A program made the position numbers and the translations under genes. Below are positions 23,441 through 46,064 of a stretch of 60,257 bases of DNA, one piece after another. The notes beneath the pieces are model-generated. The model was not told the DNA's origin. It ran no database searches and saw only the letters and a program-made list of their open reading frames with translations. Position 1 is the stretch's first letter; the number at the start of each line of letters is the position of its first letter. Origin of the DNA: Gracilinanus agilis (lineage: Eukaryota); contig NC_058130.1 in the NCBI RefSeq assembly GCF_016433145.1, positions 780,366,911 through 780,427,167 on the forward strand, in the 5' to 3' direction.

Positions 23441-23746
23441 NCCCTCTCCCCCTCCCACCCTCTCCCCTTCCCTCCCTTGGTCTCAGTTTTCTCTTCTGTA
23501 AAATGAGGGGATTGGATCAGCCAGTTTCTGAAGTCCCCTCCAGTGCTCACGGGGAGCCCAGGGCCCTCTGGGGCTCCCCAAAGACTGATCTGAGTCGCTC
23601 GTGGGTGGCTGTAGGGGGAGATGTCCATCAGAGCAGGAGGAGTTCCCCCTGAATGGAGGAGGGGCCAGGGAAAGGGCTCTGTCTGTCCCACACCGTCACC
23701 GGACACCCTCGGGGACCCCTCGGGCCACCGAAGTCCTGCAGAAAAG

Positions 23747-26700
23747 CTACTGGTCGCACGATGGCTCCCCTGCCCTTTGGGGGCCACCAGAAGCAGTGAG
23801 GAGAGCACAGAGCCCCTCGTCCGGCCCTGGCCGCCTGCCGTCCTCCGGCCGAGAAGCCATGCCGTGCCGAGTGAGCACGGCCCGAGCCTTCTCCCAGGCC
23901 TCCTTCAGCTCCTCGGCAGAGCAGCCGGCTTCAGGCGCTGCCTCGTCACCGCCTGGCGGGGCCTCCAGAACCCGGGCCAAGAGCTCAGCCTCCACCAGCA
24001 GCACGGCGAGGGCCGTGTGCACCTTGGGGCAGCCCAGGGCCTTCAGGAACAGAGTGTCGGCACCGTCTGAAAGGGGGATCAGAGCAGGGGATGGAGAACG
24101 CCCCCAGGGGGCAGAGCCCTCGGCCAGAGAGACGAGGGCTGGCCTTGGGCCTGCCCGGAGTCTAGCAGCACCCATCAAAGCACACCTCTGGGAGCTCCGC
24201 CCCCTCCCACCCCGGCTGTGGGCCACCCTCAGCCTCCTCCTTCCCTCCACTGCGTGAGGCTCCAAGGCAGAAGAGCCATAAGGGCTGGGTACTGGGGGTT
24301 AAGTGATTCACCCAGGGTCTCACTGCGAGGAGGTGCCAGAGGGCAGATTTGAACCCAGGACCTCCTATGTCTGGGCCACTGAGCCACCTAGCTGCCCCTC
24401 ATCCTCCTCTTGAGCTAGCCTTCTCCTTCCCTGTGTAGCACCCCCAATACACACTAGAATATAATCTCCTTGAGGCCAAGGATGGTTTTGTTTTTGTCTC
24501 CGGCTCCCTAACATCTAATACAGGAACTTGTGCATAGGAGGTCCTTAATGGAGGTTGAATTCCCACCTCTGCACCTTTGCTCAGACCATGCCCCCCACCA
24601 GAATGCTCTCCTCCCTGCTTTAGCTTGGTTTTCCCTCGGCCTCTCTGCAGCACACAACATAGCCAGGCTGTGACCCCCCCCCCCCGGGGTCTGGCCCCCA
24701 AGGGCAGGGCCTCAGTCCTCCTCACCCAGATGAGAATTCTTCTGACCCACAGTCACGCCCTTGGCCTGATGCTCTCCCACCTACCTTGACTCCACCAGAG
24801 GCAGCAGCGACGGAGGCTCTGAAGGACTGCAGGGGCTCGAGCCACTGCCCACTGCTGGGCCTTGGCTCGGAGGGGTGCTTCGTCCTCAGCCTTGTCCAGC
24901 ATTTGGAGCAAGAAGGGGAGCAGCAGCTGGGCAAACACAGCCGGCTCGGCAAAGAAGTTGTCTCCATCCTCTTCGTAGAGGCTGGGGGTCCTAGAAGGGA
25001 AGCACATCAGCCCTGGCTCAGGAGGCCCCAAGGGACTCCCGAGCCCCGGCCCAGCCCTCACCCAGAGCCTAGGAAGCCCAGCCTGCAGCAGGCCCTAGAG
25101 CCCTGCTCCAAGAACGGCAGCTCTTGCCTGCCTGGGGCTCTGAGGCTCAGCAGGCACTTTTCTCAATGTTGCCCTGAGCTGGCCTCCCCTCACCACATGG
25201 TCCTGGGGGGCCCCCTGGCCCAGGCTAGCTTCCTCCTAGCAGCTGACCTGCTCTGAGGAGGCCCCAGGCCCTCGCTAGCTCATGCCCAGCAGTCAGCCTG
25301 CTCCGAGGGGCTCAGAGAATGGAGAGGGAGACCGAGGTCCTCACCGACTAGTGCCGATCTCCTCCAAGAGGCCCTCCAGATCACACTGGGGGAGGTGGCG
25401 CAACAGAAGTGGCCAGGTGTCCTCGCAGGCCCCAAAGTGGGTCCCAATGACCCGAAGCAGCAAGAGCAGTCCCTGATTGGCCTGCAGCGTCATGCCAGCC
25501 TCCCAGGGCTGGGCCCCTATCTGTTGGGCCAGGAGGCTGGCAAACATGGATGCTTCCAGCCTCACTGCCTTGTCCTCATCTTGCAGCAGGAAAATACCAG
25601 CATTCAAAAGCCTGAGGGGGGAAAAGTACATGTAGTCAGGAAGTGCAGGACCAGGCCAGGGGAGCTGAGAGGGAGAGCAACGTTTCCATGGGAGGCAGAG
25701 GAACGGGGCGCCACAGGAGAAAGGAGGCCGCTGGCACCAGCCCCTCTCCTCTGCCTAAGCCGTGAGGGCAGAGCATCCCACAATGGAGGTGTGCACCCAC
25801 GTACCCCAAATGGCCTTGATTATAACTAACCCCCATGGCGGGGGTGGGGAGGGGGGGGTTAGGGGGGGGTCAGACTCAGTTGCCAAATGAAGGGGTGGGA
25901 TGAGATGGCTGAGGCGCCTTCCCCTTCTAGAGCTGGGAGCCCTGCATTTCCATTTGCTAGAGACCCAGAGGTGCCAGCCAGAAGCAAAAAGTTCTCCTAC
26001 AGCCCAGCTCAGTTTGCTTCTCACTGTGCCATCTTGTCTCTCAAGAGTCTTGCTTCCCCCTCATAGTTTCACCAGGTCCAAGAGCTTCCTGCCTGGCCCT
26101 CAAAGAACCAAATCACTGCCACCTTTGCCTCTGGAAAGGCCAAATCAACGACTGTGGCTGCTTTGGGGCTCCACTCTCTGTCTCTGTGACTTCTTGAACC
26201 CAAACACCCCTAGCGGCCATCATTCTCCCCAGGTATGTCCCCTTCCCCACTCCTGTCTCCTGTCTTCCTATTTGTATTTCGTCTTAATAAAAGCTCATTT
26301 GTTCCTTCATTCTGCCTGAAAACACCCACCAGCAGCCATCAGGTAGGCTGGGTGACCTGCCCAGGTCCAGGCCATTCTACCATTGCAGAGCAGAGCACAG
26401 TATGGACCCTTCATTTCCCCCTTCTCCCTGAAGCCTTCCCTGATTATCCCAGCCTAAAACAGGTTCTTCCTCCTCTTGCTCCAGTCAAATCGGCCCACTT
26501 GTCCTTCTCTGTACAGGGATTTCATCTCCCGCCTCCATGCCTTTCAATAGGCTCTGTCCTATGTACCCAGCTGTCCAGTTGGAAGACCTCAAAGCTGGGT
26601 GCCAGCCATCTAGTCCAGATGACTCGAAGACTGACTTCTCTACTTCAGCCAAATGTCATCTAGTCTAGCCAACTACGCCAGGCAGAATTCCCTGCCATAT

Positions 26701-29700
26701 TCCTCTTGGCAAGAGGCCATTCAGTCTGAACTTGGACACTCCGAGTGACAGGGAATTCACTCTATCACAGCTCTTTCTTTATCTTGGGCTCAGATAAATG
26801 TCCTTATAGAGTGTTCTATCTGCTGTCCACTTAAAAGCACGAGTCTCCTCTCACAGGCTGGATTGTGAACTCCTTGAGAGAAGGACTACATTTTCCCTCC
26901 TTCCTCATGTCCTCATAGAGCAACGGTCGGCAACCTTTTTGGCCGTGAGAGCCATAAACGCCTGCGGAAGGAGGAGGATGGAGGCGGAAGGTGCTGGAAT
27001 ATGGGGCTGGGGCTGAGGGGCCCCCTGGGGCACATCCTGGGGCTCTGCCCAGACTGGCCGGTCGGGAGGTGGAGCCAGATATGGCTCGAGAGCCATAAGT
27101 TGCCGACCCCTGTCACAGAGCATGGCCTAGCGCTAAAGAACCTCAGAGTTGATAGACCTCATCTAAGCCGGACCTGGCCAATGGCTAATCAATCTTCATT
27201 TGAGAACCTCCAATGATGGGGAGCCCCCCCACTTTCTGGAGATGGCCCCTTCCAGTGCGGGTCAGTTCTTGTCGTTAGAAAATTTCCCTAACATCAACCC
27301 CAAATCTACCTACCTGTAACTTAAGAGACCAAAGATCTAGGCCTAGAAGGGCCTTCTATAGAGGCCACTGAGTCCAAATCCCTCATTTTACAGATGAAGA
27401 GAGATGACGTAACTTCCCCAGTCGCACAGCCAGAAAGGGACAGTGCTGGGATCTGAACTCAGGTCTTGTGACTCCAATTTTAACATTCTTCCCGACGCTC
27501 TCCAATGCTTTCCCTCCAATGCTCCCGGCTCTTCCCTCTGGGGCTAACCAGAACAAGGCTATCCATGTTCCAGGTAAGAGTCCTACACATCTTTAAGGGC
27601 ATTTCACTTCCCCCAAACAGTGCTCACCTGCCCTATTTGCCCTTCTAGCTTTCCCTTTTTGGCCCTGGCGTGTGGCAGATCCCAACCAGCTGGCACTGGA
27701 GTTATCCATCATGGCCTGAGCCTATCCCAGAGGTCCTGGAGCAGCTTACCGGAGAGCCAGAGCTGCCACAGTGGGCTCCGAGTCTGCCCAGGCTTCAATC
27801 ACCACCTGGACCCCAGCCAGGCGGAGGGACTGCGCTGCTGCCAGTCTCAGCTCCTCACTGGTGCGGGGCTCACTCCAGCGTTCGAGAACCAGGCTCCAGG
27901 GGCCCAAGCCAGAAAAGTCCTCAGGCCTGGGAGTCGAGATAAAGACAAAGAGGGAAGATGCCATCACAGAAGGCCCACCAAGAGATCCCCAGCCCAGGCT
28001 AACACCCAGACTCACAGGAGTCACCTCGTAGGGCAGAGAACTGGAAAGAGCCCCGGGCTTGGAGTTCAGGATATTATGAACACAGGACAGTTATGGAAAG
28101 GAAGGGATGTCCAGGACACAGTCACTAATCAGGACAAGTGGATGGGAGGACAGGCATCAGCAACAGTGTTTGATGTCCCAGTAGAGAGGCCTTGAGCAGG
28201 TCCTTTGCCTGCTCTGAACCTCAGTTTCTCTCTCAAATGGGATCACAAACTCGTTCTCCCTCCTGTGCGAGTGGTTTAGAGGAAAAGAACTCATCAGTTC
28301 CAAAGGGCTGAAGAAATCTGTACCACCACTGTCACCGCTGCCGTGCTCCCTCTCGCCTGGGCCTAGGGAGAACTCCCAGGTGCCCCTGCCCTGTCCTACA
28401 GATCAACCGCTCAGGTGGGAAATCCTGGGCAAAGTTGTATCCCTCCCAGTCTGCCTCAGTGTCCTCATCTGTAAAATGGGGATGAGAACAGCCCCGGCCT
28501 CCCAGGGTGGCTGTGAGGAGCACTTCGTAACAATCATAGTCTATTATTATTGTTGTTGTTGTTAGGAAGGACTAGTGGCTCATGGGGCTCCCAGCTCTCT
28601 AAAGCCCCTAGCATGAAAGAAGGCGTCCAACAGCGGCTTAGTCTAGCCTCTAGAGCTAACATTGCCTCTTCTGGCGCTCTGACGCTCACAGAACCCTTCG
28701 GAGACACAATCCCTAGGAGGGCAGGGGTACGGGCATTGTTGCCTCCATTTTACAGATGGGGAGACTGAGTCTTGGAGAAAGAGAAGAGACTCTTCCTTGT
28801 GGCAGAGGGGGCCCCTCCTCCAAGACTCTTCAAGAACATTTAGCCTAAGCCACTGAAATCCCAGCTGAGGAGGCCAAAGCCCAGGGAATGGCAGAGGCGT
28901 GCCCAAATACCCAGGAAGCAGGCAGCAGAGTGGGATGGGGCTGGGGGGGCTCAAGCCCAAGGCCGTGAGATCACAGAGGCTCAGAGTAAGAGCTGAAGGA
29001 GGCTTGAGGTCACCCGAGCCCTAAATGGCAGGTAGGATGTGGCCAGGCACCTCTGACTCCAAGGTCAGAGCTCCAGCGACCTGGTACAGAGTGGCACCCC
29101 GCCCCCCCAGCCTGCACGAGGTGGCCCCCTCGTGCCCTACAGAGGGCCCCCCAGCCCCTGCACTGAGGGCCCCCCATTTGGCACAGGGAGATCCTTCCCC
29201 CTACTCCCCACCCCTCAGTCAGAGTGCCCAGCAATGGCGGTGGGAGGAGGGGGGACGCCCTACCCCAGGGTCAGGAGCAGGCTGAGGGCGGGCAGTGCCC
29301 TGCTCTGGAGGGTCGGGCTGGTGCCAGCCGTCTCCACCAAGGAGAGCAGTTGATCTAGGCAGTCTGGGGGTGGCAGCGGCAAGAGCGGGTCATTGTGGGC
29401 AGACGGGTCCTCGTGCAGGTGCACCAAGGCCTCCAGGTGCAGCTTCAGGCCTTCGGGGCTGCCTCCCTCCTGCAGCACAGGCCACAGCGTCTCCTGGGGA
29501 GGCCAGAGAGTCAGACTCGGACCCCAGACCGTCCTGCCGCCGCCACCCCCCACCCCTGGGTGCCTCCCCAGCTCCTGGGCCTCCTGCTTGGCCAGGCTCG
29601 GGTCTGCTCCTCCCTCTGCGGAGGGCCTGGCGGAAGGGGGTTCGACAGGGCTCGGCTCCCACGCGGATGTGGGCAGAGAAGGTGGGGGATCAGGCAAGGC

Positions 29701-32700
29701 AGGAGCTCACCAGCAGCAGGGCCCGAAGAACACTGGCCACAGGCTTGCAGCGGCCCCCCTCTTCCAGCACCCAGGCCAGGACGGCCTGGCGCACCTCGGG
29801 GTCCGGCCCTCGGAGCAGGGAGCCCAGGGCCCAGGCCCGGGTGGAGTCGGCCAACCTCCTGGCCTCCCCGCAAAGGAATCTGGCGCACTCCTGCCGCAGC
29901 ACGCTGGAGCCCACCTGAGAAGCAAGGCAAGCCCCCGCCGGGGTGGCTCAGCACCGACGGCGTGCCAGGCCCGAAGCCCCCAGCCCAGCCAGAGAGCATT
30001 CACGGGGGAGCAGCCTGGACACTGCTGGCCTCCGTGTCTCCACCAGAGGCTCCCTGACCTCAGTCTCCCTCTCTGTGAATGGGGATAAGAAGAGCAACAG
30101 CCCCCCTCACAGGGTTGAGGGGCTCCCCGGCTGCTGGGGCTGATCTGTTCCCCAGCCCCCTCTCCTCACTGGAGGCCCTGCCCAGTGAGAGGCCGGCTCC
30201 TCCCCACCATCCCTGCCTGGCCTCCCTCTGTACCCAGGGCCGGCCTGGCCAGCACCGAGTCCAGCCCCACAGCAGGGCTTCTACCTGAGCCTCCGGCCCG
30301 GGGTGGCCCAGCTCCCAGGCTACGGCGGACTCAACCTTCTTCAGGAAGTTCTTGCTGCAGCTGCCGGCCAGCAGGGAGAGAAGCCGCAAGTAGGCCGAGC
30401 GGATCAATGGGCAGCGCTGGGCAGGGGTAAGCAGCCAGAAGCCGTCCTCTGCCTGAGACACCGCGGCCTGCAGGTCCTGGGAGGACTGACTGTGGCCAGA
30501 GAGAAGCAGGGGCTCAGCCTCCTCCTCCAGGAAGGCCATCCTGTGCCCTCAGTCCCCAGTTAGGTGTCCTCTCCAGGGGTCCCCTGCCCACCTCCACACA
30601 ACAAGGGCCTCTGTACTCTCTTCGTATCCCCGGGGCCAAGCTTGGACCAACGGGGAGGAAGAGCCCTGGAGGGGGTCTGAGGCCTGGCCCCCCCATCCCC
30701 AGGCTCCCCTGGCCTCTGCGGGAGGCCCCCAGTGAGGAGAGGGAACAGCCAGCATTCACTGCACTTCCCACTACACCATCTCAGTTAACAGGTCGGAGCC
30801 TCAGCCTCTCTCTCTGGAGCACGGAGGCCTCGCACTCAGGCCCAGAGCCACGGGAGCCTTTCCTCTGGCCTCAGTTTCTCCATTGGTCAAATGACAGGGT
30901 GGGAGCCCTGAGGCTTCAGAGGGAACCCCTCCGGCCAAGTGACTGGTCCAAGGCCACACTGCCTCTGGATCCGACCCCAGAGCCCCATTTCTCTCTACTG
31001 CTCACGGCCTGTCTTGTCCAGCCATAACTGGGCAGGCCTCCCCTCCGGGCCACCCTGGAGCTCCCCCGCCAGGCTCACCTGGCGCTATCCTGGGTCAGCA
31101 GGGCATGAGCCGCCAGCAGGCGCCCGTGAAGCACGTTGTGGGGCCCGGGCCTCGCTACGTCCCCCAGCAGCCGCGGCAGGACCCACTTCGGCCCCCCCAG
31201 AGACACGAAGGGCACCAGGGCCCGGGCGGCCATGGCCCGCGTGGCGTAGACGGGGCTCGCCGACAGGTAGAGCAGCAGCTCCCGGAACCGCACTGCAGAG
31301 CTATGTTCGGGGTCAAGTGTGTGGTGAGCCCCTGAACTCAGGCCCCCGAACCCGGAGAGCTCAGGCCTGGGCTCTCCTCGGACAAGGCCCCCCACAGCCC
31401 CAGGTGGAGCCCGGGAGGGCCCCGGCACGGCCAGCAGGAAACCCCAGGCTAAGCGGAGCGGCCGGCGCCCGAGCACCGTGGGATGGCCGCGCCGAAGCCA
31501 GGGCGGCCTTCCTCCTTCGGGCCTCTGGCAGCAGCGGCCCAGGCCATCCTCCTCCTTCCTCTCTGGCCTCCCGGCCCATCTCAGCCTCCCTGCCTCCCTC
31601 CTGGGTGAGCTTTAGCCACCGCGGCCGCCCTCCCTCCAGGCCCTGCTCCCCCCACCGGAGCCCCAGTACCTGGTCAAATGCTCCGTGCCAGGCTGGAGTC
31701 TGGCCAGGAGGGTGAGGACAGCGTGGAGGGCAGGCCGGAGGCGGCCGTCCCCCATGCAGCGCAAGGAGGAGAGCAGCGGGGCCAGGAGGACGTCCTCCAG
31801 CTCCGGGTACAGGGTGAAGAAAGCCTCGGGGCTCAGGCCTTTGTGGGAGCCGCTGTCCGCCCGGCTCAGGCTCTGACCCAGCAGCCGGCCCATGAGGGCT
31901 CCTGGGAAGGCACATCCGGGCCATCCGCTCAGTGGCTCCACCCACAGAAGGGCCGCCAAAGCCCAAGCCCTGGCCCCAGCCCCGGCCGCCTCGACCTGGC
32001 CCCCGGCCCAGCCCCCCGGCCCAGCCCCGGCCCGAGGGACTTCCCGGTGGGGCTCCCACTCACCGAAGAGCTGGGTGCCGGCGTTCCTCATGGCCCAGCA
32101 AGGGGAGCCCAGCGCCGCCAGACACAGCTCGAGGAGGGGCCCGACCCACCTGAGCATCGGGGCCCCCAGGCCAGCGCCCCGGACCAGGGCCGGGAGCACG
32201 TGCAGAGCCGAGACCTGCGGGACAGCGAGCTCCTGGCGAGCGTGGCCGGGCCCGGCAGCCCACACCCCCACGGCGTCTCCCCGTCAGGCCCTCGAGCCTC
32301 CCGACGGGGCTGGAAACCCCATCTCGGCCCCAAGGATCGCCGTGCAGAGGCAGAGCGAGTGGCCAGTGGGCCTTGAGGGGTCAGTGGGTCAGCGAGGGGC
32401 GGAAGGACGGCCTTGCCGCAGGGCTCGTGGTCTGGACAAGAACCGAGGACCCGGGGAGGCCGAGGCCGAGGGAGACGCGGCCGCTTGGGGTCCGCTAAAG
32501 GATGTCCGTCAACCCGGGAGTGGCGCCTCTGCAGAGGGGCCGGGCGTGGTGACAGCCAAGAGGACGGCCACCTGGGGAAACCGAGGCAGGGCCCTCGGGC
32601 TCCCGGCAGATGGACACACGGCTCGCCGTGGGGAGGCCAGAAGGCACGCGGGTTCCCCGCTGGGCCTCTGGGGCTGGGGAGGTGCCGGGCCCGCCCTGCT

Positions 32701-35700
32701 CGGCCCCTCACCTGGGGCAGGTCCAGAGTCTGGTCCCAGGCCTGAGGCAGGGGCCTGCTGGCCAGATCGAGGAGCGTCTCCACGCAGCAGGCCAGGAGGG
32801 GCCGCACGCCAGTCGGTGGCTCCCCGGCCACTATGCTCTGGAGGAAGAGGGGGAAGCCTGCCGCCCGGCGGGTCACCGAGCTGTTCCGGGGGCCGCTCAG
32901 CAACTCCAGGCCCTTAAACAAATCGGGAGATGGCGTAAATGGGGGCCGACGGCCGGGCGGCGAGGGCCGAGCCCCCTCGGCCTCCCCCCGGGGCCCCCCA
33001 ACGCCACCCCCCCGAGGAGCCGCCGCTACCTGGGCGAGCAGCTTCTGGGGCAGCTCCTGCAGCTCCGGCTCGGGCTGGCCCAGCAGCGTCCTGCAGAGCG
33101 TGGTGAGGCCGGAGGCGCAGCCCTCCAGAGCGCCCTGTGGGTGCAAAGAGGGGAGGGACAGGGGAGCGCCGCGGGGTCAGGAGGGGGCGGGGGGCTAAGC
33201 CGGGGGCCCTGCCGCTCGCCGAGACCCTCCCGGCCACCCCCGGCGGCCTCGCCAGGGCCCGGGCAAGCCGGGGAGGAGGAAGGAGCTTCCAGAAGGCTCA
33301 GGACACTCACCCAGTGGCGGCACCTGAGCAGCAGCCCCTGCAGGGTGGCCACGATGGTCTGCAGGCCCTCCGGGGGCAGGAGCGGAGACTCAGAGCCGGC
33401 CGTCGGCGGGGCCAGCAGCAGGACCTTCTCTGCCAGGCCTCCCAGAAGCAGGCCGATCTCCTGGGCAAGAGCGTGAGGGCACGCGTGAGGCTGCGGCCAG
33501 GGGGGTCAGAGCAGCCCCCGAAGGGCTTCCCCAGCCTCCCGGCCAAGGGAGAGCACCCCGACGTGCCTGGCTGGCCCCCCTCCGCTCTCCTGTCTCTGCC
33601 CCCAGGAGGCAGCGCCCAGAGAAGGAGGAGGAGCTGGCCAAGCCTCCACTCTGACATCCCTGACGAGCGGCTGCCTGGCATCTCCCCGAAGACCTCCAAG
33701 AACGGAGGGACCCCTGGAGGCGGCTCCCAGTGCCGGGACAGCTTCCCCCCTTGGGGCCAAACAGAGCACAGACGCCCCCCATGGTGGACTCTCGGGCCCT
33801 TGAGGACGGCTCCTCTGCCCCGCCTTGACCTTCTCCTCTCCAGGCTCCACATTCCCAGTTCCTCGGCGTCCACCGTGGGGGCCCGCCCTCAGGGGTGCCT
33901 CCTCCTTCCTGCGGTGGGAGCCTGTCCCAGACCGGGCCATCCTGTCCACTCCCAGCCCGCGGCCCCGGACCCTAGGCCGGAGCTCACCCTCACCGTGTCT
34001 GCCCATCCCGGGCTGCCTCCTCTCACCTTGGCAGAGATCCAGCAGCAGGTGAGGATGCGTCCCTGCTCCTCGGACAGCAGGAGTGGGGGTTCTCCCTCCT
34101 CCTCCTCGGCCCCAAAGTCCCCAGCTCTGCCCTGCCACACAGCGGCGTTGATGGCCGCCCCCATGTCAGCCAGGGAGGGTGCAGCAGCTACCAAGACACC
34201 ACAGCGAGGGTCGCCACGGGGCTCCCGGACACGAGGGCACCCAGAAAGGGGAGGCCCTGGGAGGGGGGCTTGAAAGGGGCCCCAGCCCACCCGGGGACAC
34301 TGCCCCCTGGCCCCGTTGGCACGGGTACCCACCTGGCTGCAGGTCTTCTCCGGAGCCCTGCAGGACGGCCAGAAGGAAGGAGGCGACCTCAGCCAGCATC
34401 GTCACGGTGTTCATGAGCAGCTCCTGCCAGGACTCCTGGGTAGGGGTCTGCTGCATGGACAGGCTGGTGCAGGGGGCCTCCAGGAGGCATCGGCGCAGGG
34501 CGCACAGAGGTCCTGGGAAAAGGACACCTTCTCGGCGAGGGCCCCGGTTCCTCCTTTGCCCAGCCCTGCCCAGCCCGTCTTTGCGGGAGCCCCAAATTCC
34601 CAAAAGCCTCCCAACACTGGCTGCCTGGAAACCAAGAGGGAGGGGATGGCAGGGGCCAAAGGCAGAGGGAAGGGAAGAGTGAGACCAGGGTGGGCTTAGA
34701 GGGACCAGGAGAGACACGTAGAGAACACTGGAGATGAGAGAGAGAGAATGGGAGGGAAGAGAGAACAAGATGAGGAAACCCTGGGGAGAAAATTCCCTAA
34801 ATTCCCCACAGAAGACCACAGGGAAGAAAAAGAATGAGGGGAAGGACACGAATGGGGGCAGAGGCCACGGAGAGAGGATGGGGCGGCGGGAAGAATGGCC
34901 ACAGAGGGAGACAGAAATCAGGGAAACCCTGGGGAAAAGAGAGAACCGGGGGAGGCAGGAAGTACAAGCACAACAACAGATCGGGAAAGAGAGCCTTGGC
35001 ACAGAGTGAAAAGGGAAAACTGAGGGGACACCAGCAGGAAGAGAAAGAAATGGGGGCACCCAGTGGTAAGAAGAAGCAAGGGCAGCCAACGGTGAAGAGA
35101 GAGGAACAAGGGNAGTGGTAAAGAGAGAATGGGGGGACACGGGAGAGAGCCAGGGGACCCACTAGGGAAGAGACAGCTGGACAGCACATAAGGAAGTGAG
35201 AAGACATGGTGTGTGGAGGGCAGTAAACAGGGTTAGAGGCTCCTCAGTCCCCCCAGAAGCCCCTACCATGGAGTGGCTGAGTGCAGGCAACCTGCAGCAG
35301 ATCTTGCTGGGCCGCAGTGTGACGCTCTTGAAGCAAACGGAGAAGGTAGGAGACGAGAATGAGGCTGGGGCAGTCGGGGGCTGGGCCGTCCTCCTCAGGC
35401 CCGGGGACAATCTTCTGGAGGGTGTCACTGTCCACTCTGCCAAAGATGAGAGCACACGTTGCCTCCCGGCAACCCTCAGGCTCAGGAAGCCTGGCCAAGA
35501 ACCCCGAGTCCCACCACCTCCCCTTCACCCCAAGAGGCAGCCCTGAGAGGCAGAGTGGAGGAGAGGAAGGCCCCAGTGGGTGGGGGAAGGAGAAAAGGGA
35601 AGCCTGAGTCTCTGAGCCCACCCTGCCCCCTTCTCCACCCCAAAGCCTTACTTCTGCAGCAAGGTCTGCATCATGAGGGCCCCAGCTTCCACCTCCTGCC

Positions 35701-38700
35701 CACGGGGACTGCTCAGGGCCTGGCATGCCCGCTCTAGCAGGGCTTCACCCAGGGTTGTGGGCAGAGGAGCAGGGAAGTAGAGGTGCAGAAGGTTGGCAGC
35801 TGGCTCCCGGATCTGGGGAAGAAGCGGGGGTCAGAAGCTCGAGGGGCCTGGGTCAGGCTCTGCTGGATCTGGGGATAAGTTGCTCCCCTCCCCAGCTCCT
35901 AAGGCTTCCTCCCTGCACTCAAAATCACTACAACACCCTTCGAACTTGTCTCGCTCCTGATTCTAGATTTGCCTGGTTTCTTGGGCATCTTTTAAACCCT
36001 TTCTTCCCATCTCAGAATTAATACTGTAGGAATAAGCAATGGGGATAAAGTGACTTGCCCAGGGTCACACAGCTGGGAAGTGTCTGATGCCAGATTTGAA
36101 CCCAGGACCTCCCGTCTCTAGGCCTGGCTCTATCCTGGCTCATCTAGCTGCCTCTAGACCTCTTGAGATGTGCCTCACAGACATCTCAGACTCAACATGT
36201 CAAAAATGGCCTCTCTAAACCCTGGGTTTTCTGAACCTTCAGGGGCCTCGCTTCTCTCCCCCCTTCCCCCAGGCTCCCAGACCACCCCCCACCCAGGTCG
36301 AGGCTGGCGCCAAGTGAGTGTGATTGGTTGGACCTTCACAACATCTCTGGGATCTGTCTCCTCCCTTGGACCACTGAAATGGCTGCTGCGGTGGGGGCAT
36401 CTTTCTCCTGAAGTTTCAGCTAAGGCCCCATCCTCCACAGGGAGCCCCCTTCACCTTCGTGCCCCCCCTCTTTATCCATCATACTTTGCCTGCCACCTCC
36501 CCCTTAGCCTGGGAGCTCCTGGCGGGCAGGGCCTGCCTTCTGCCTTTCTTCGGCCCCCCGTGCTCAGCACGGGCCTGGCACATGGTAGGTGCCTAACCAG
36601 GGGCTACTATCTTGTTGCCTCCTAAGATCATGTTGTTGGAACAGGAGGAACCGTAAAGGCTACCAAGTCCAATCACTTCAGTTTGGCAAGGAGGAATCTG
36701 AGAGGCAGGAGATGGCACAGGCTGCCCGGCTGGCCCAGACCCCACAAGAAAGGACAGGAACAGAGCCAGGGATACAAGATGGCATGGAGTGATTCCTCCA
36801 TCGAGGTCATGGTGGTCCTGGCTGGCGGAGGACCTCTGAGAAGTAGCAGATGCTCCGTCCTTCTTTCCTCCTGCGCCCCTCCACTCCATTTCCCCCTCCC
36901 AAAGAGGAGGGTGTTGGCCTGCCTGGCTCTGAGATCCCTCCAGGACTAGGTGCCACGGCTCTCTCCTGCCTCCCAGCCCACCCTGACCTCTCGTCTCACC
37001 CCCCAGCTCAGAGACAGGCCCTGGAGGAGCAACCCTTCATCTCCAGGATCTTCGGCCCCAGGGAACCATCATCTGGGGCTCCAGAGGCAGGAGGGCGCTC
37101 CCTTGGAAGCCCCTGCACTCCTATCATGGGCTCTCCCACCTTGTGGGGGTCTTCTGGCCAGAGGGCAGGGCCCCATCTCGTCCCCCCGCCCCGGCTTTCC
37201 CAGGACAGCGCGCCCAGTGCCCTCCCCATCCTAGGACGGCGGCCGCCCCAGGCTAGGCGCCTCACCTCACTTGTGCTGTCCTGAAGGCAACTAAGCAAAG
37301 CCAGTAAGGTGGCCCTTGAGGTGAAGTCCCAGCGGCCGCTCTGCCTGGCCCAGCTCAGCAAGGCCGCCATGTTGGCTGGAAGGCAACGGAGGGGAGGGGG
37401 ATCAGCGGGACAGGAGGCCGGCCCAGGAAGGAGCAGGAGGGTCGGGAGAAGTAAGCGGGGGTGAGGATCGGGGTGGGCTCTGCGCAGGATTGGGGCTGGC
37501 TGGGGACGAGGCCGAGTGAGGACTCACGGGGAGGCTGCCCCTTCTTCCGCTCCGGCCTCCAGCTGTCCGTGCACGTCCCCAGCAGGGCCGTGAGCAAGAG
37601 CAGGGCAGTCCTTCGGCGCTGGAAGCTGGAGGCTGGGCTCAGCTGGGAGACGCTGAGCTGGAGAAGCCACTCCACGAAGTCTGCAGAGGGCGAGAGGAGG
37701 CTTGGGAGAGCCCAGACGGAGGCTGCCACCCCAGGGCCCGGTCCCAGGTGCCCACCCCTCGGCCCGCAGCTCACCTGGGAGTCACGGTTCAGAGCCTCTA
37801 TGGGCCAGAGCCCTCCTCGGGGGTCCAGGCCCCGAGGCTCCCAGAGCCCACCGGGCCACCCGCTGCCCTCCATCCCTGCCTGCCCTCCCCCTCAGCAGGA
37901 CGGGGGGCTCACCTCCGGCGAGCACGAGAGGCTGCGGGGGCAGGCCTGATCCAGAAGCCCCCTGGCTGCGAAGCGCGGCCAGGGCGCTGTCCCGGAGTCT
38001 GCCCAGGAGCCTGCTCACGGTGGCCTGCAGCAGCTGCCGGAAGGAAGCTGAGGAGTGGCTGAGGTTCAGCCACAGGAAGTCCTGGAAGAGGGCCAGCTCC
38101 TTCGGGCCAGGGGCCTGGGCAGAGCCGGGCCCCCCACACAAGAGGCTGGCCGCCATCAGGCGCACGGCCTCATCCCCACACGCCAGGCACACGGACAGGC
38201 GGGCCGGGCTCTGGGTCACGGCCGAGGGGCCCTGGCCCAGCTCCCTCCGAGACCTCTGCAGGGACGCCCAGCCCCGCAGGCAGCCCAGCCCCGAGCCCGA
38301 GAAGGCCTCCTCCAGGAGCCCCGCCGTGGCTGGGAAGAGCTGCAGGGTGTGAGGGAGCAGGGAGTTGGCCGCCCGACCCTGCAGGCTGGGCACCGCAGAC
38401 TGGAGGGCCTCGGCCAAGGCCGGCAGCCAGTGCCGGGCCCACCGCTTGGCCAGGACCTCCTCGCTGGCTACTGCCTCCACCATGGCCCACTCCCATCGCT
38501 GGGCCTGGAGGAAGGAGCGGTAGGTGTCCGCCGCTGGGGGGCTCAGGGGGTTGGTGGACAGGCAGAGCAACAGGTGCTGTGGGAGCTCCGGGAGCATATC
38601 CAGGACCTGAAGAAGAAGGGGCAGTGCCCACGCTGGCCACAGCTCCCTGCTGGGGGCCCGCAAGGAGGAACGGGGCACTGCCCGTGGCAGAATCGAGGCT

Positions 38701-41700
38701 GGCTACAGGATGTGCGAGCTGGGGGCTGGCAAAGCTGCCCCTCACAATCGCCCTGGATCAGTCACCTGTGCCCCAAAGCCACTCCACCAGAACCAGTCTA
38801 AGCCCTCCTAGGAAGGCTGCTCTGGGCCCCATCACCCCTGGCCGTGGTGCTGAAACGGTGACCGCCCAAGCTAGGTCATTTGAGGGCTCCCCTGCCCTGG
38901 CCCTCCACTGCTCTGGGAGAGGCTGCTGAGGCCAGGCTCCCTGCAGGCAGCCTCCCCGGGCTGGCCCAAAGGAGGGAACACGCACCTTGTCAGAGCCCAG
39001 GAAGGGCAGCAGAGCACAGAGGGCTGGGTAGCGGGCCTTAGTCGACCAGGGCAAAGCCTTGATCTTCTCTAGGAACTCATCATAGAGGGGCCGCTCTGTA
39101 TCCCCAAGGAATTCACATTCTTCCCGATAAAGCACCAAGAAGAGGCTGAAGCAGCGCAGGGTGGCCTCAGACAGGCCTTCCAGCTGTGAAGGGATGGGCT
39201 CCATGTGCCAGGGAAATGGCCATCTACATTCTTCCCTTCCCCATGTGCCAGAAAGATGGCCACCTACTTCCTCATCTTCCCCTTGGACACTGAGGACCAC
39301 CTATTATTCCCTTACCTCCCCTTGGGCACCAGAGTTGGGCATCTACTCCCTCATCCTCCCCTTGGGCACCAGAGATGGGCATCTACTCCCTCATCCTCCC
39401 TTTGGGGCTTTGTCTGGCTCCCAGTCCAGGCTTTGCCATTTCTCCAATCCCTAGTCCAGAGACTCAAGCATGGCATCCATCCTCCAGTTGGGGATACCTT
39501 TTGTTGCCTTGTGACTTTGGGCCTCCCCAGAGCTGCCTTCCTTCTCACGCTTTATCTCCTGATCCCACGAGGGTCTTTGGAGACCCCTCTCATCACCTTC
39601 CCCCGGTCTCATTTTACAGACACAGGGATTGACCCCAGATGGAGGAGTGACCACCATAATCTTAGAGGGCTAACATCTGAACCCAGGTCCTGGGGGCCCA
39701 CCCCAAGATATCAGGTCTTGGCAGCACGCCAAGGAGTGTCTACAAAGATCTTCGGCCCCATCTTCCCGGAGCCACCTCCTGGGTGGCCCAAGGTCCGTCG
39801 GCCTTCTCCAGACAAAGGGCTCAGTCGCTGTTCACAGACGTAAGGAGGATACTGCCCGGCCCGGCCCTCTGAGCCCAGGAAGCCGAAGGTGGCAAGGTGA
39901 GAGCTCCCTACCGGGCTCTCTGTGTTGCTCCAGATGAAGTAGGTCAGCATCTGGATCCTCAGTGAATCGCTGCTCAGCAGTCGGCCAATCCAGATGCTCG
40001 GGGCACTTTCTTGTACCCGCTGCAGCCACAGGGAGAAAACTGGGAAGGGGACAGCAAAAGCCAGGCTTTCCTCTCCAGTCCAGTCACCTTGGCCCTCCTG
40101 CCCACCTCTGGTGCCCCCCGCAGGCCCTTCCAGGCTCGGAGCCTGTGCTCTCGTGCGGGTGCCCCTCTCCTGCATGAGGGCCTCAGCCACCAAGGCCAGG
40201 ACAGAGCAGTTCCAGAAGGCCTCCGCCCACGCCTGGCACCCCGACCCCAGCCTGAGCCCGGACATGCTCCGCCAGCAGCAGGCTCTGGCCATAAGCTGCG
40301 TGTTCCCACAGGCCCGGGAGTCCTCACCCTGGAGGAGGAAGGCACGATGGTCCACGTTCTTCCCGTTCCAGTCGGAGTCGATGCAGGGCATCAGGTTACT
40401 GAGCAGTGGGCAGGCCTGGGAGGGTAGAGAGCAGAGCCCGGGGGGCTCAGGGCCCAGGACGCCAGAGGGAAGGCCGGCCCCTCGCCACCGCCGCCTCCTC
40501 TAGGCTCCCCAAGCTCGGGTTCAGGCTTACCATCCAACCAGGAGCCTTGAAGGTCAGGATGTCCCTCCTGCAGGCAGTGAGAAGGCCTCTGCTCAGCACC
40601 AGGTCCTCCAGCCCGTCGGGGTTCATGGGGGGCAGCGTCACCTGGAGCCACCCCAGCGTCTCCTCCCCGCCATCTAAGGACAAGGCGCCTGCTCAGAGGA
40701 GGACTTCTCCTCCCCATGCCCGCTGCTCCTCGGGCCGGAGGCCAAGCCCGCCCCTGACCGGACCGCGGCGCCCGCCCGTCTCCACATGGAGGCTGAGGAG
40801 CCCCGTCCGGCCTCACCTGGGTAGAGCATGTCCAGCAGCTCAAAGAGAGCCCGGGCCCCGACCTCCGGGGTGGGGGCGGTGTTCACCAGCATGCCCAGGG
40901 CTGTGCCAGCCAGAAGGCGGGCATCCTTGTGGGCCACCTGGGAAAGGGACAAGAGTGGAAGCGGGGGGCCCTCCCGTGAAGGCGGTCAGCGGGCGCCACC
41001 CCCCGTGGCCTCCCCGGCTCTCCTCACCTCTCCCATGATCACTTGCACCAGGGACTGAAGGATGCTTGCCAGGGACTCCACGTCCTCGGCTGGGTTCCAC
41101 ACCAAGATCCCCACTTCCTCCGCCATGATCTGGAAGAGCTGCAGGGCCAGCTGTGGGCAGAGAGCATGCCGGCCCCGTCTGAGCAGCCCAGACCGTACCC
41201 CACCTCCTGGAGACCCCCGGGAACTCCCGACAGCCCTTCTGGAGGCCCAGGACCCCAGAAAGCAGGATTCTGGGGGTGTGGAGAGCAGACCCCCCCGGGG
41301 GGCTGGCCCAGAGCACCCCAAGGCCTGCGGGTGCTCGACCAGGACTTCTCGGGCACAGCCCCTGAGCTGAGCCTTTTGGGGGGAGAGGGGAGGAGAGGGG
41401 GAACAAGGGGGCAGGGAGGGCGCCCACCTTCACTGCGAGGTAGGCCTGCTCCGCCGGCCCCGTCACAGGCTCCTCTAGCACAGAGGCCAGCGTGGAGGCG
41501 GCACAGTCCAGCAGGATGTCCAGGGAGCGTCTCCAGTGTTCTCTGGCCAGGCTGCTCTCCTCCAGGAACAGACACACTGGGCAAGGGGGGCCCACGACAT
41601 CAGCACGGCCCGAGGAGGGTCCCCAGAGCCGCCGGGGCTGCCTCCCTCCAGGGCTCCCGGGCCAGGGCACAAGGGGTGGCTGCAGGGCCAACTTCCCCAG

Positions 41701-44700
41701 GGCCGGATTCCAACCTCTGGGACAGCCAAGAAGGGACAGGAACCCCAGGCTGGGAAGCCCCCCACCTGCCATCCCTTCCCTGGACAATGGAGCCTCGGCT
41801 CCCCCCTCGGGAAACCACAGGAGACTGTGGGCGGCCGCGGGACTGACCTGTGCGGAGCTCTCCGAGGGCCAGCGCCTAGAAGGGAAGGGCAGCGTCAGTA
41901 CCCGCAGGGCGGTCACCCCCAATCCCAGCCCCATCGGGGAGCCCTGCGGCCTCCTCACCTGCCGCTCCTGGGTCAAGCTGCCCAGTAGCCTGGCCACTTC
42001 CTCACACGCCATGGTCTCTCTCCCTGCGGTCAGCGTGTCCAAGATCTGTGAGGAGGAGGAATGGGGGCAGTCAGGCTGTGGCCTTCCTGGCCTGGTCTCG
42101 AGGGCCCCCACCCCCATCTCCCTCACTTCTCTTCATGGCCCGTGGGCTCCATCTCCCACCTCCAAGCCTTTGTATGGGCAGTGTCCAGCACCTGGATTCT
42201 CAGAGCCTTGTCTCCTGCGAGGGGCAGGTCACACGGCATCTCCCACTGTGCCTCACAGAGCCTGGCACACACTATCTCCCATGACTTCATTGTGGGAGGT
42301 ATTATTATCCCATTTTACAGATGATGAAACCGAGTCTCACAGAGGTTGAGCTCCAACCCAGCCATGGTCCCACCTAAAATCTAAGTACCCTGAGGACAAG
42401 CCCAGTTTTGCCTTTTGTCTTTTATCCCCCAGCCCAGCAGCTACGTGGTCCAGGGGCCTGAGTTTGAATCCTGCTCTGTGTCCTGGGGCCTGTCCCTCCC
42501 TTCTCCGGGCTTCAGTTTCCTCCTCTATAAAATGGCTGGCTTCAGAGGGCTTCTTCAGAGAGTGGAGTTCCCCAGAGAAGGAGGGCCCAGGATCCCCCCA
42601 GTCCCTCAATCCTTGATGCCCGAGGCCAGGCCAGCCACACCACCCTCACCCCAACAGTCAACCCTGGCCTGGGCTGCCCAGCTCTACCCACCTTCTCCAG
42701 CTTGCGGAAGGCCCCCAGGCTGCCCATGGCCTCCAGCTGACAGGCCAGGAGGCACCTCAGGAAGGACTGGACTTCAGGGACACCCAGCTCATCCCAGGCC
42801 TCGCTCAGAGCAGGTAGAAGACTCCCAACCTCTGCCAGGCTTTGCTCCTGGCACCGCCGGCCAGAGGCTCTGCAGAGATGGGAGAATGGGCTGCTCAGCA
42901 CGATAGCATCACCCTGTGCCCACCCCGTGGGCTAAGAGGGACCCGGAGCCCCTTCTCCCCGGCCCAGCCCAAGCCTAAAATAGAAGGCTTCACGAGGACC
43001 CCAACGCCATCCCCACTCACTCCCCAGACCCTGGCCTCCCCGCCTACCTCACCCTCTGCCCCAATCCTAACGACTCTGGAGCCCCCAAGGCCTTCCTTGC
43101 ACATCCCAGCTGTCTGGGGGAGCTCTAGAGGGGCACCCCCAGGAGCAAAGCCTGACTCTTAGTGGGGGGAGGGGGGACCTCTCTCCCCTGTACGAGGGCT
43201 GGGCAGCCCAGAGGTCACTGCAGGGGGCAGCGAGGAGGAGAGAAAGAGGGAGACACAGAGACACAGACAGAGGGACACAGGAAAACAGAGACAGAGGGAC
43301 ACAGAGCCTCAGAGGGACACAGAGGCACAGAAAGACACAGACAGAAGGAGACAGAGACTCAGAGAGACATAGGGACACAGATTCAGGGAGAGACACAGGG
43401 ACAAAGAGACACAGACAGAGACTCGGAGAGACACAGACAGAGAGAGACAAGAGACTCAGAGAGACACAGGGACATAGAGACAGAGGGACACAGAGACACA
43501 GAGGGACACAGATTCAGGGAGAGACACAGGGACACAGAGACACAGACAGAGACTCAGAGAGACACAGACAGAGGGAGACAAGAGACTCAGAGAGACACAG
43601 GGACATAGAGACAGAGGGACACAGAGACACAGAAGGACACAGATTCAGGGAGAGACACAGGACACAGAGACACAGACAGAGGGAGACAGAGGGACACAGA
43701 GACAAGGGGAGACAGAGACTCAGGGAGAGACAGGGAGAAATATAAGGGCACAGAGACAGGGAAACAAACTCAGGGAGAGACACAGGGACACAGACAAGGG
43801 GAGACAGACTCACTCAGAGAGACACAGAGGGAGACAGAGACTCAGAGAGACATAGGGACACAGGAAAACAGAGACAGAGGGACACAGAGCCTCAGAGACA
43901 CAGAGGCACAGAGAGACACAGACAGAAGGAGACAGAGACTCAGAGACAGAGGGACACAGATTCAGGGAGAGACANGAGACTCAGAGAGACACAGGGACAC
44001 AGAGACAAGGGGAGACAGAGATTCAGGGAGAGGCAAGGGGAGACAGAGACTCAGAGAGCCACCGAGACACAGACGGAGGGAGATAAGAGACTCAGGGAGA
44101 GCCCCAGGGAAGAACACAGGGGCACAGAGACACAGAAGGACACAAAGAGCCTCAGAAAGACACAAAGACTCCGAAAGATACAGACTCAGGGAGAGAGCCA
44201 GGGACACAGAGACACAAAGATTCGAAAAGACGCCCACTCAAGGAGAGGCAGGGACCACAGGGGAGGTAGAGACTTGGAGAGCGGCAGGGCGAGAGACTCG
44301 GGGAGATTCAGGGCCCCAAAAGCCCGGGGAGCTCGAGGCGAGGGCGGGGGGCGGTGGCCAAGGGAGGGGCAGACCAAGCCTCAGCACACAGCAGGCGCTT
44401 GGCCCACCGCAGGGTGCCGCAGGGACCCTGAAAAGGACAGAGAATGACAAAGACAGAGACGCAGAGAAAGACAGAGGGAGGCAGACTGCGCGCCTCCCTC
44501 CTTCACTCTCATTGAACCCCAAAGCTGGACACGACCAGAGAAGCCAGAAACCCCGCTTCTCCCCCTTTCCCCAGAGATGGGAGGGGGGTGGGGGGATCCA
44601 GGGGTGGGGATGGGGAAATGAGCTGGGGCCTAGTCTAGGGGCGGAGCCTCACCACCCAAGGGGCGGGACCAGACTTTGGCCCCGCCCACTCGTTGGAAAT

Positions 44701-44955
44701 CTATTCTCTCCGGGGATGGGACCTAGCTCAGAGGTTGGGGCGATGCCTTAAGGGGCGTGGCCTGGCTTGCCTAGGGGGCGGGGCTTGGCTGAAGGACTAG
44801 GCGCTAAACTGTTCGGGGCGGGGTCTCGCGGCTCGAGGGCGGGGCCTGGCTCACCCGGCGAATCCTTGGAGCATGCGTAGCAGCTCAAGCAGAATCGGTG
44901 GTGTGTTGGGGCCACAGCTGGCCAAGCAAGCACGGGCTTGGTGCTCGGCGCCCAT
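23747..44955 (-). CDS. THADA-like / Trm732-family ARM-repeat protein with DUF2428 region (divergent THADA paralogue), 31 coding exons, 1897 aa
   Basis: Hand-assembled exons (minus strand): 44955-44855, 42869-42692, 42045-41959, 41875-41848, 41576-41428, 41150-41028, 40937-40817, 40673-40531, 40415-40328, 40039-39912, 39183-38986, 38606-37913, 37680-37528, 37375-37266, 35812-35652, 35436-35267, 34512-34333, 34187-34027, 33460-33311, 33134-33030, 32912-32712, 32214-32064, 31901-31670, 31300-31079, 30540-30285, 29914-29711, 29493-29264, 27926-27750, 25611-25345, 24990-24785, 24066-23747. They sum to 5694 nt (1897 aa + TAG). All introns are GT-AG with matching phases, and the start is a perfect Kozak GCCGCCATGG. 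THADA-type motifs include LPWSTKARYPALCALLPFLG, ILTCCWISAKEIGLLLG, LRCRHWGALEG, SVTRRAAGFP, WAMRNAGTQLF, NVLHGRLL, RCPLIRSAYL, LLQDEDKAVR and LYEEDGDNFFAEP. Confidence 0.9.
26921..27112. mobile_element. hAT MITE, 192 bp, in THADA-like intron 28
   Basis: TIRs are CAACGGTCGGCAAC and GTTGCCGACCCCTG. The 8-bp TSD is TCATAGAG / TCACAGAG (one mismatch). Confidence 0.85.
39215..39405. repeat. 40-bp minisatellite (2 near-identical and ~3 diverged copies) in THADA-like intron 10
   Basis: CCTCCCCTTGGGCACCAGAG(T/A)TGGGCATCTACTCCCTCAT repeated at ~39315 and ~39355, with degenerate copies upstream. Confidence 0.8.
43240..44230. repeat. Complex GAGACACAG-type minisatellite in THADA-like intron 1
   Basis: Mosaic of 'gagacacag', 'agggacacag' and 'gactcagaga' units. 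Confidence 0.9.
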
Positions 44956-45200
44956 GGCGGCGAGAGCGGCGGCCCTGGGTTCTCGGGAGGTCTGCGGCGG
45001 GTCCGTGGCTCGCGACTGGCGAGCCTCCGGCGTGCACTCCCAGCTACGCTGCGGCTTCCGGAGCCATCGAGACCTGCCTGCCCCGCCAGCGCCTATTTGT
45101 GTGCGAGAGCCAAGAGCGCCCCCTGCGGGATCGGAGGGCTCAGTGCCTCCGCCGGGAGCTGACAGGCCTGAGAGAGAAGGGAGGAGGGATGCCAGGGACC
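44630..45200 (-). promoter_or_regulatory. CpG-island promoter of the THADA-like gene
   Basis: CpG-dense around exon 1. An ETS-type CCGGAAG lies on the minus strand at 45055-45061, and several GGGCGG GC boxes lie at about 44640-44845 just inside intron 1. Confidence 0.7.
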
Positions 45201-46064
45201 CAGAGAAAGACTAGTGAGGGCTGGACCAGTGAAGACCAAGATGAGGCTCAGCCTGGGGCCAAGACAAGGACTCCAGAAAAAGCCCAGGAAAAGCCCAGGC
45301 GGCCGGAGCGGATGAGGCCAGCGCCTAAGAGGGCTGGGAAAGAGACAGAGACGTTGACAAGACCAGAAGAGACTGCCTAGGAGCAGCGATTCTGGGGAAA
45401 CCTCCCATCTCTCCTCTGGGCCTCCGTTATTTCCAGGCTCTCCTGTGCCAGCATTGTTGCTAATTGTCTCCCTCGTTAGACCAGAGTCCCACGGGGGAGG
45501 CACAGCTTCATCTTTCTCTGTGTGCCCTGCACTTCTCATGTTGCCTAGCACACAGCAGGCACTTAATAAAGGGGGTGCCTGACAGGAACAGAGAGCCTCT
45601 GAAAGAGAAGAACCTCTAAACGGAATAGTTCTTAAAAAGTCAAATATAGACACTTCCTAGCTGTGTGACCCTGGGCAAGTCACTTAATCTCCATAGCTGT
45701 TCTGCCTTGGAACCAAAACATAGTATTGATTCTAAAACAGAAGGTAAGGGCTTTAAAAAACTCAAGTAGGAGGAATTCGGCTGGGTAGCTCAATGAATTA
45801 AGAGCCAGGCCCAGAGATGGGAGGGTCTGGGTTTAAATCTGGCCTCAGACACTTCCTAATTTTGTGGCCCAGCCTTAGTACCTTTCTGCCTTGGAACCAA
45901 TACACAGTATTGACTATTAGAGGGAAGAGAAAGGCCAAAAAAAAAAAAAAAAAAAAGTCAAGTAACACAAGCATCCTACAGATCCCCTAAGACCATACCA
46001 ACAGCAGCAATTTTATGAAGCTCTGGCACTTAGAAATTAAAAGGTCTTTAGGGACCCTCTAGTT

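Follow-up and report, generated by a model that had tools for sequence, protein, structure and literature searches.

Does this part of a marsupial genome hold a second gene of the THADA/Trm732 family besides THADA itself and, if so, how old is that gene and what might its product do? The question is raised by a 60,257-nucleotide (nt) stretch of contig NC_058130.1 of Gracilinanus agilis, which is called the window here. A preliminary description of this DNA had reported an intact, compact gene at 23747-44955, with no mention of the strand; the gene lies on the minus strand, from an ATG at 44955 to the end of a TAG at 23747. Our analysis indicates that this locus is very probably an intact protein-coding gene, namely the marsupial (probably didelphid) orthologue of a 'THADA-like' lineage of the si:ch211-225b11.4 type within the THADA/Trm732 family, which we call L as opposed to canonical THADA. 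The predicted product is a protein of about 1885-1897 amino acids (aa) consisting of helical repeats with DUF2428 and Trm732 TPR domains.

That the protein is a member of the THADA/Trm732 family, as had been proposed, is upheld by Pfam domains, three motifs and a THADA-like predicted fold. Exon open reading frames (ORFs) of the window matched PF10350 (DUF2428) with 59 bits (E 6e-16) and 27.2 bits, and two pieces matched PF25151 (TPR_Trm732_C) with 43.8 and 40.1 bits, the cut-off being 27 in each case; PF25150 (TPR_Trm732) reached 25.6 bits against a cut-off of 27 on exon 12 alone, and this domain is on record in the full-length orthologues. One exon piece matched human THADA in the PDB (8y2o_A). 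Motif 1 reads CRHWG in the window, with R, H and G kept and the third position changed from R to W, motif 2 reads TRRAAGFP and keeps R-R-x-A-G-x-P of the family form RRSAG(L/I)P, which is required for Cm32 formation, and motif 3, NVLHGRLL, fits N-x-[IL]-H-G-x-L-L. For the fold we used the possum orthologue (Trichosurus P0072, 79% identical to the window protein) as a proxy. An AlphaFold (AF2) model of its 881-aa core, built from a 23-sequence alignment with a mean predicted local distance difference test score (pLDDT) of 83.3, matched THADA of the FTSJ1-THADA-tRNA complex (8Y2O; 8y2o_A) with a query-normalised template-modelling score (TMq) of 0.77 and E 3.7e-26, compared with a TMq of at most 0.35 for all other helical-repeat proteins.

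We derived the gene model by dynamic programming on open frames and GT(GC)/AG sites, with tblastn alignments to orthologous proteins as a guide. The model joins 31 exons in phase into a single ORF of ~5.66 kb without stop codon or frameshift, in a gene of ~21.2 kb that begins with the ATG at 44955-44953 in a Kozak context (GCCGCCATGG) and ends with the TAG at 23749-23747; each of the 30 introns has GT-AG borders, and their median length is 354 nt. The homology-guided model hence reproduced the intact gene first described, with its 31 in-phase exons, Kozak ATG and canonical splice sites. Its reported length of 1897 aa was recovered exactly by one parameter set, but alignment to seven marsupial orthologues favours three in-frame junction changes, which give 1885-1887 aa: a 28-nt exon 4 at 41875-41848 (ALALGELRT) instead of a 40-nt one at 41805-41766, an exon 22 acceptor at 32214 instead of 32232, and an exon 23/24 junction at 31670/31300 instead of 31656/31292. 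The window protein is colinear with these seven orthologues from residue 1 to the C-terminus. The exons are free of N, the single Ns at 35113 and 43975 being intronic, and the coding sequence shows strong codon periodicity (GC1/2/3 of 0.70/0.49/0.82, compared with an intron GC of 0.62). Protein composition in lineage L is shifted towards L, A, G, P and R, in parallel with the GC-rich locus. A chance ORF is excluded because the homology to annotated proteins has E = 0. Constraint is argued from an ORF that is uninterrupted over 31 exons in lineages that parted ~80 million years ago, from the invariant motifs and from the codon periodicity. Other models were discarded: one built from splice sites and human codon usage alone (32 exons, 1718 aa) wrongly skipped known exons, and two with weak penalties for unaligned codons (2334 and 2194 aa) were over-extended by spurious micro-exons.

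How widely does this lineage occur? When a 200-aa exon stretch was compared exhaustively by HMMER with 1.84 billion representative proteins, 71 matches were obtained, the best of which was 1789 aa long and 79% identical. A word-indexed search named the relatives from Dromiciops, Trichosurus, Vombatus, Sarcophilus, Macrotis, Phascolarctos and Antechinus 'thyroid adenoma-associated protein homolog' or 'THADA-like', and a match from Petaurus carries no name; an L protein from Gracilinanus itself was not among the matches of these protein searches. After the marsupials, the next L matches came from duck, other birds, a turtle, lizards, frogs and a hagfish entry named Si:ch211-225b11.4, and cluster look-ups added proteins from Rhineura, lungfish, bichir, coelacanth, arowana, pipefish, sardine, sturgeon, elephant shark, cow shark and skinks. 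The window protein is 74-79% identical to the L proteins of eight marsupials and 36-49% identical overall to those of birds, reptiles, frogs, lungfish, fishes and sharks (46-48% for birds, 36-41% for fishes and frogs). Its identity to the amphioxus homologue is 30-32%, compared with 27% between canonical THADA and amphioxus, and its identity to the canonical THADA of opossum and possum is 24-25%. Going by these protein sequences, the L lineage is present from sharks to birds and marsupials and is no marsupial peculiarity. The idea of an ancient paralogue kept in marsupials accordingly holds as far as age and retention are concerned, but not as a marsupial trait, since the gene is also found in sharks, ray-finned fishes, lungfish, coelacanth, frogs, reptiles and birds. 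The further claim that no eutherian counterpart is known stands in so far as two protein-database searches, in which the genomes themselves were not covered, yielded no eutherian or monotreme L member. Short matches that resembled eutherian relics proved to be fragments from birds, fishes and lizards. NCBI annotation already carries this gene under the names 'THADA-like' and 'thyroid adenoma-associated protein homolog', so that the window adds a member to a known, unstudied group; full-text literature searches found no paper on a THADA-like paralogue.

Is L then distinct from THADA within one and the same genome? A search seeded with salamander (Ambystoma) THADA, which anchors the canonical clade to human with 1208 bits against human 8Y2O, retrieved canonical THADA from Trichosurus, Dromiciops, Vombatus, Monodelphis, Gracilinanus and Sarcophilus. 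Both genes are present in at least four marsupials, the possum (Trichosurus), the devil (Sarcophilus), the monito del monte (Dromiciops) and the wombat (Vombatus), and also in Rhineura, Nyctibius, Nerophis and Paramormyrops. Canonical THADA is 85% identical between opossum and possum, and the marsupial canonical proteins are ~60% identical to salamander THADA. In the opossum, canonical THADA spans 441 kb and lies on another record, whereas the L gene measures 21 kb in the window, 24-25 kb in possum and wombat and 11 kb in duck. A separate canonical THADA, for which the preliminary description had suggested looking in the same genome, thus turned up in Gracilinanus. These data also bear out two points of that description: the window gene is not a 1:1 THADA orthologue but falls into a separate clade with an SH-like approximate likelihood ratio (SH-aLRT) support of 100 and 24-25% identity to marsupial canonical THADA, and the gene is small with neighbours of its own, its 21.2 kb lying between a GSC2-like homeobox gene and a Myb/SANT gene, compared with the 441 kb of opossum THADA.

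We then asked how old the separation of the two lineages is, using trees computed with IQ-TREE (LG+C20 PMSF, quick search). L and canonical THADA formed two clades, each with an SH-aLRT of 100, the canonical one containing THADA of opossum, possum, devil and Dromiciops, and the window sequence was sister to the L genes of the Australian species and Dromiciops, the position that an American opossum should take. The L clade, with hagfish at its base, was nested among invertebrate homologues in the order of the species tree (protostomes, ambulacrarians and amphioxus, vertebrates), and canonical THADA stood outside this L/invertebrate group together with a protein of the amphipod Hyalella. Approximately unbiased (AU) tests rejected canonical THADA and L as one clade (delta log-likelihood 67, p ~1e-85) and Hyalella on the invertebrate/L side (delta log-likelihood 54, p 4e-6), for groupings that were both named after a tree had been seen and that involve long branches. 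Observations independent of the trees point in the same direction. The Hyalella azteca protein (P0067) carries canonical-type strings, namely CATRRSAGIPF, RNSSTLLF, LGDSIIPFVSDG, GVKR and the LG(D/E)xIIPxVxDG pattern, and of 35 columns in which L and the invertebrates share a state that differs from canonical THADA, 13 have the canonical state in this protein and 4 the alternative one. No column unites canonical THADA and L against invertebrates and fungi, while 4 unite L with the invertebrates. Human THADA, in turn, scored 452 bits with Hyalella, 380 with a mucoralean fungus, 336 with amphioxus, 198 with possum L and 192 with the centipede Strigamia. We favour a split before the divergence of protostomes and deuterostomes because the trees, the AU tests, the Hyalella strings and columns and the scores of human THADA agree. 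L would then probably be directly orthologous to the one THADA homologue present in amphioxus, hemichordates, echinoderms, brachiopods, nemerteans and a centipede, with canonical THADA as a separate ancient lineage shared with an amphipod. With slightly less assurance, we would read THADA and 'THADA-like' as two lineages that parted before that divergence and not as vertebrate duplicates, which makes the separation, already taken to be ancient, look even older than had been assumed. As a side observation, the two arthropods represent two types, Hyalella azteca (P0067) the canonical one and Strigamia maritima (P0060) the invertebrate/L form, and a fragment (P0071) also leans to the canonical type.

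The strongest competing account is that L is a vertebrate-specific THADA ohnologue from the two rounds of whole-genome duplication (2R), and that canonical THADA falls outside merely through its long stem and long-branch attraction. Both clades span sharks to tetrapods, as such an origin would have it, and canonical THADA joins whichever long branch is present: without fungi, canonical THADA and Hyalella together became sister to L (SH-aLRT 81). This result tells against the deep split, as does the fact that the latter rests on one full-length invertebrate protein of canonical type, that of Hyalella, and on long branches. The neighbours of THADA at 2p21 (PLEKHH2, ZFP36L2) and the GSC2/CLTCL1 region at 22q11 presumably have paralogues on 14q and 17q, much like a 2R paralogon. 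An ohnologue is, however, hard to reconcile with the AU rejection of a clade of canonical THADA and L, with 0 columns for that pair and 4 for L with invertebrates, with an amphipod protein that has canonical-type states at 13 of 35 columns against 4 and the motif strings besides, or with a human THADA that resembles the fungal and amphipod homologues more than it does those of amphioxus or L, which ill fits a merely accelerated copy. We regard a 2R origin as a serious though less favoured possibility, and a split before the protostome-deuterostome divergence as somewhat more likely.

What might the protein do? Cryo-electron microscopy of FTSJ1-THADA-tRNA has given the residues in contact with tRNA and FTSJ1 (PMC12145424), and we mapped these from 8Y2O via Ambystoma THADA onto a 38-sequence alignment. 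Every L protein, including that of the window, keeps K/R199, Q680 and W1054; R1104, H1105 and G1107 of motif 1; T-R-R-x-A-G-x-P of motif 2; P1358 and R1363; and N1401, H1404, G1405 and L1407 of motif 3, the L1408 of which is kept in all but two frog proteins. Since the contact residues are largely kept, the likeliest function would be that of Trm732/THADA, with L acting as a second FTSJ1 adaptor for 2'-O-methylation at tRNA position 32 (Nm32). The protein would form a hollow alpha-solenoid cylinder that takes the tRNA inside, the C-terminal segment of FTSJ1 would dock on the helix and loop bearing motif 3, and this docking would place C32 for 2'-O-methylation; such a second Nm32 adaptor might have a different tRNA or tissue range.

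Several observations weigh against this proposal. Two changes are fixed in gnathostome L at positions that are invariant from fungi to canonical THADA, R1106 to W in motif 1 (C in one fish) and S1161 to A in motif 2, hagfish L retaining the ancestral R1106 and S1161. Three residues of human THADA, E1225 and the base-stacking F799 and Y843, are also missing from L proteins, and the loop before motif 3, with the FTSJ1 contacts C1393 and F1398, is variable everywhere and shortened in marsupials, C1393 and F1398 not being conserved. Evolution is faster as well, with 79% identity between American and Australian marsupials for L compared with 85% for canonical THADA, and the mammalian stem is long (0.64 compared with 0.23). 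Some of these points have a benign reading. F799, Y843 and E1225 are equally absent from invertebrate and fungal homologues, and are therefore novelties of the canonical lineage. RRAAGFP is compatible with activity because yeast Trm732 S750A grows like wild type (217 min compared with 210 min; PMC9088939, Table 2). L might instead be a neofunctionalised scaffold without any role in tRNA methylation, for instance with ER (endoplasmic reticulum)/SERCA-type or trafficking roles such as those reported for THADA, for which non-tRNA roles have been described (PMC5392496). The lineage-fixed R1106W and S1161A, the diverged FTSJ1-contact loop, the faster evolution in mammals and the apparent lack of the gene in eutherians would all suit a scaffold. 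Against it, nearly all family-invariant tRNA- and FTSJ1-contact residues have been kept for more than 400 million years and the S-to-A change is functionally silent in yeast; moreover, if the invertebrate proteins are orthologues, the L lineage must perform Nm32 where it is the sole copy. We consider this scaffold unlikely and retain the second adaptor as the likeliest function.

Two further alternatives carry little weight. That the gene is a decaying or non-functional copy in Gracilinanus agilis, a thought prompted by the GC-rich and fast-evolving region, is highly improbable in view of a 5.66-kb ORF over 31 exons without stop or frameshift, canonical splice sites throughout, colinearity with orthologues, invariant motifs that are kept and strong GC3 periodicity. 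That it is a fast-evolving 1:1 orthologue of human THADA, with which it shares Pfam architecture and similar length, has a next to negligible probability, given that marsupials hold a separate, conserved canonical THADA in a clade anchored to human via salamander THADA, that identity is only 25%, and that locus and gene size differ (441 kb against 21 kb).

All exons of the gene lie on the minus strand. Exon 1 (44855..44955) carries the start codon, encodes an N-terminus 81-87% identical to those of possum and devil, and lies in a GC-rich, CpG-island-like 5' region (44500..45500; GC 0.63-0.66, CpG observed/expected 0.55-0.58). It is followed by exons 2 (42692..42869) and 3 (41959..42045), by exon 4 (41848..41875), the micro-exon chosen by orthologue alignment in place of the alternative that gives the 1897-aa length, and by exons 5 (41428..41576), 6 (41028..41150), 7 (40817..40937), 8 (40531..40688), 9 (40328..40415) and 10 (39912..40039). 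Exon 11 (38986..39183) contains LPWSTKARYPALCALLPFLG (39054-38995), which the preliminary description had cited, and exon 12 (37913..38606), the largest with 694 nt, covers the TPR_Trm732 region. Exons 13 (37528..37680), 14 (37266..37375), 15 (35652..35812), 16 (35267..35436), 17 (34333..34512) and 18 (34027..34187) lead to exon 19 (33311..33460), which ends in motif 1 (CRHW|G, codons 33322-33311 and 33134-33132), the motif being completed in exon 20 (33030..33134). The DUF2428 core with motif 2 (TRRAAGFP, 32873-32850) lies in exon 21 (32712..32912), followed by exon 22 (32064..32214; acceptor 32214, in-frame alternative 32232) and exon 23 (31670..31901; donor 31670 fits the orthologues, in-frame alternative 31656). 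Exon 24 (31079..31300), within TPR_Trm732_C, encodes the counterpart of the helix that binds FTSJ1, SPVYATRAMAARALVPFV (31257-31204), and motif 3 (NVLHGRLL, 31137-31114). Exons 25 (30285..30489), 26 (29711..29914), 27 (29264..29493), 28 (27750..27926), 29 (25345..25611) and 30 (24785..24990) precede exon 31 (23747..24066), which includes the stop codon. A 391-N run (23051-23441) starts ~300 nt 3' of the latter; AATAAA was not seen in the readable 3' untranslated region, and a polyadenylation signal is not placeable because this region runs into the masked block. Intron 1 harbours a degenerate purine-rich microsatellite field of ~800 nt (43250-44083; ~93 copies of GAGACACA-type units, 61% matches), and the last intron a tRNA-derived short interspersed element of marsupial type (24280-24400, minus strand; ggcagctaggtggctcagtgg...), which fits a marsupial origin.

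On one side of the L gene, the window contains a goosecoid-type homeobox gene on the minus strand (3541-4710 and ~7907-8487; Homeodomain 51.7 bits, RRHRTIFSEEQLQALEALF), most likely GSC2, as it matches the duck homeobox gene that adjoins ESS2. On the other side lies an intronless Myb_DNA-bind_5 ORF of 343 codons on the plus strand (50552-51580, 60.8 bits). A Myb_DNA-bind_5 gene adjoins the THADA-like gene also in duck (342 aa), possum and wombat, and the window ORF is therefore an old resident gene and not a recent transposon copy; in possum and wombat it stands divergent at the 5' end of the L gene, as in the window. The duck order is Es2 (ESS2), homeodomain, L gene, Myb_DNA-bind_5, a TSP1/SBSPON-like gene and a mitochondrial carrier (Mito_carr), and the duck homeobox and Myb ORFs match the window at the expected places. 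The L gene thus sits in a conserved ESS2-GSC2-[L]-Myb/SANT-SLC25A1 block. ESS2-GSC2-SLC25A1 is the human 22q11.21 block, which is not known to have an annotated THADA-like gene. Between the homeobox and THADA-like genes we observed a conserved non-coding element of ~450 nt (window 19190-19640; duck L001 7960-8460) that is nearly gap-free against duck DNA at the equivalent place, e.g. ttcactggagaaaatggcttggtaatgcttcttttatca and aaggttaatctgctttggccgttcatttgtcaaaagtgaatttatagg, and that is probably a developmental enhancer of GSC2. A small gene at 19.2-19.6 kb was considered and rejected, for the element matches on both strands and reads as non-coding. The homeobox gene, this element and the Myb gene have the same order and strand in duck and marsupial, only the L gene being inverted (window 23747-44955, duck L001 10001-21136). 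A LINE (long interspersed element) reverse-transcriptase fragment (RVT_1, 88.7 bits; 48113-48601, plus strand) lies between the THADA-like promoter and the Myb gene.

Interest attaches mainly to how deep the split is, to the loss that eutherians have apparently undergone and to the two motif changes that became fixed. THADA has been studied as the sole FTSJ1 partner for Nm32, and its locus is also implicated in diabetes, polycystic ovary syndrome, cold adaptation and thyroid tumours. Here most vertebrates have preserved a second family member for over 400 million years, although protein databases yielded no eutherian copy. Zebrafish, frog, chicken and opossum may thus possess a back-up or specialised adaptor without equivalent in mouse or human, which bears on the interpretation of thada knockouts. 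If the proposed history and function are true, eutherians have lost a widely conserved Nm32-adaptor lineage and rely on canonical THADA alone, and many invertebrate 'THADA' genes may be orthologues of the L gene and not of human THADA. The R-to-W change in motif 1 and the S-to-A change in motif 2 offer a natural experiment on the roles of these motifs.

Among known systems, the closest are the marsupial proteins that NCBI calls 'THADA-like' (e.g. Trichosurus P0072 and Sarcophilus P0074), which belong to the same clade, are 74-79% identical and colinear exon by exon, and share the CRHWG and RRAAGFP signatures and the Myb/SANT neighbour; the window gene differs in occupying a more basal branch, sister to the Australian species and Dromiciops in every tree. 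Human THADA (8Y2O chain A), the FTSJ1 partner for Nm32, has the same Pfam domains, the same predicted cylinder fold and motifs 1-3, and its contacts K/R199, Q680, W1054, R1363 and N1401 are kept in L. It is nevertheless only ~25% identical and lies in a separate clade; L differs from it by R1106W, S1161A, the lack of F799, Y843 and E1225 and a shorter loop before motif 3, and by a 21-kb gene beside GSC2 as opposed to the 441 kb of opossum THADA. The homologues of amphioxus, hemichordate, echinoderm, brachiopod, nemertean and centipede share with L the C-R-H-x-G-A-(I/V)-(E/D)-x-C context of motif 1 and the YAVR helix, whereas invertebrates, hagfish and fungi keep R1106 and S1161, unlike gnathostome L. 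Yeast Trm732 also counts among these related systems; fungi have the RHRGAF..Y form of motif 1, as in canonical THADA.

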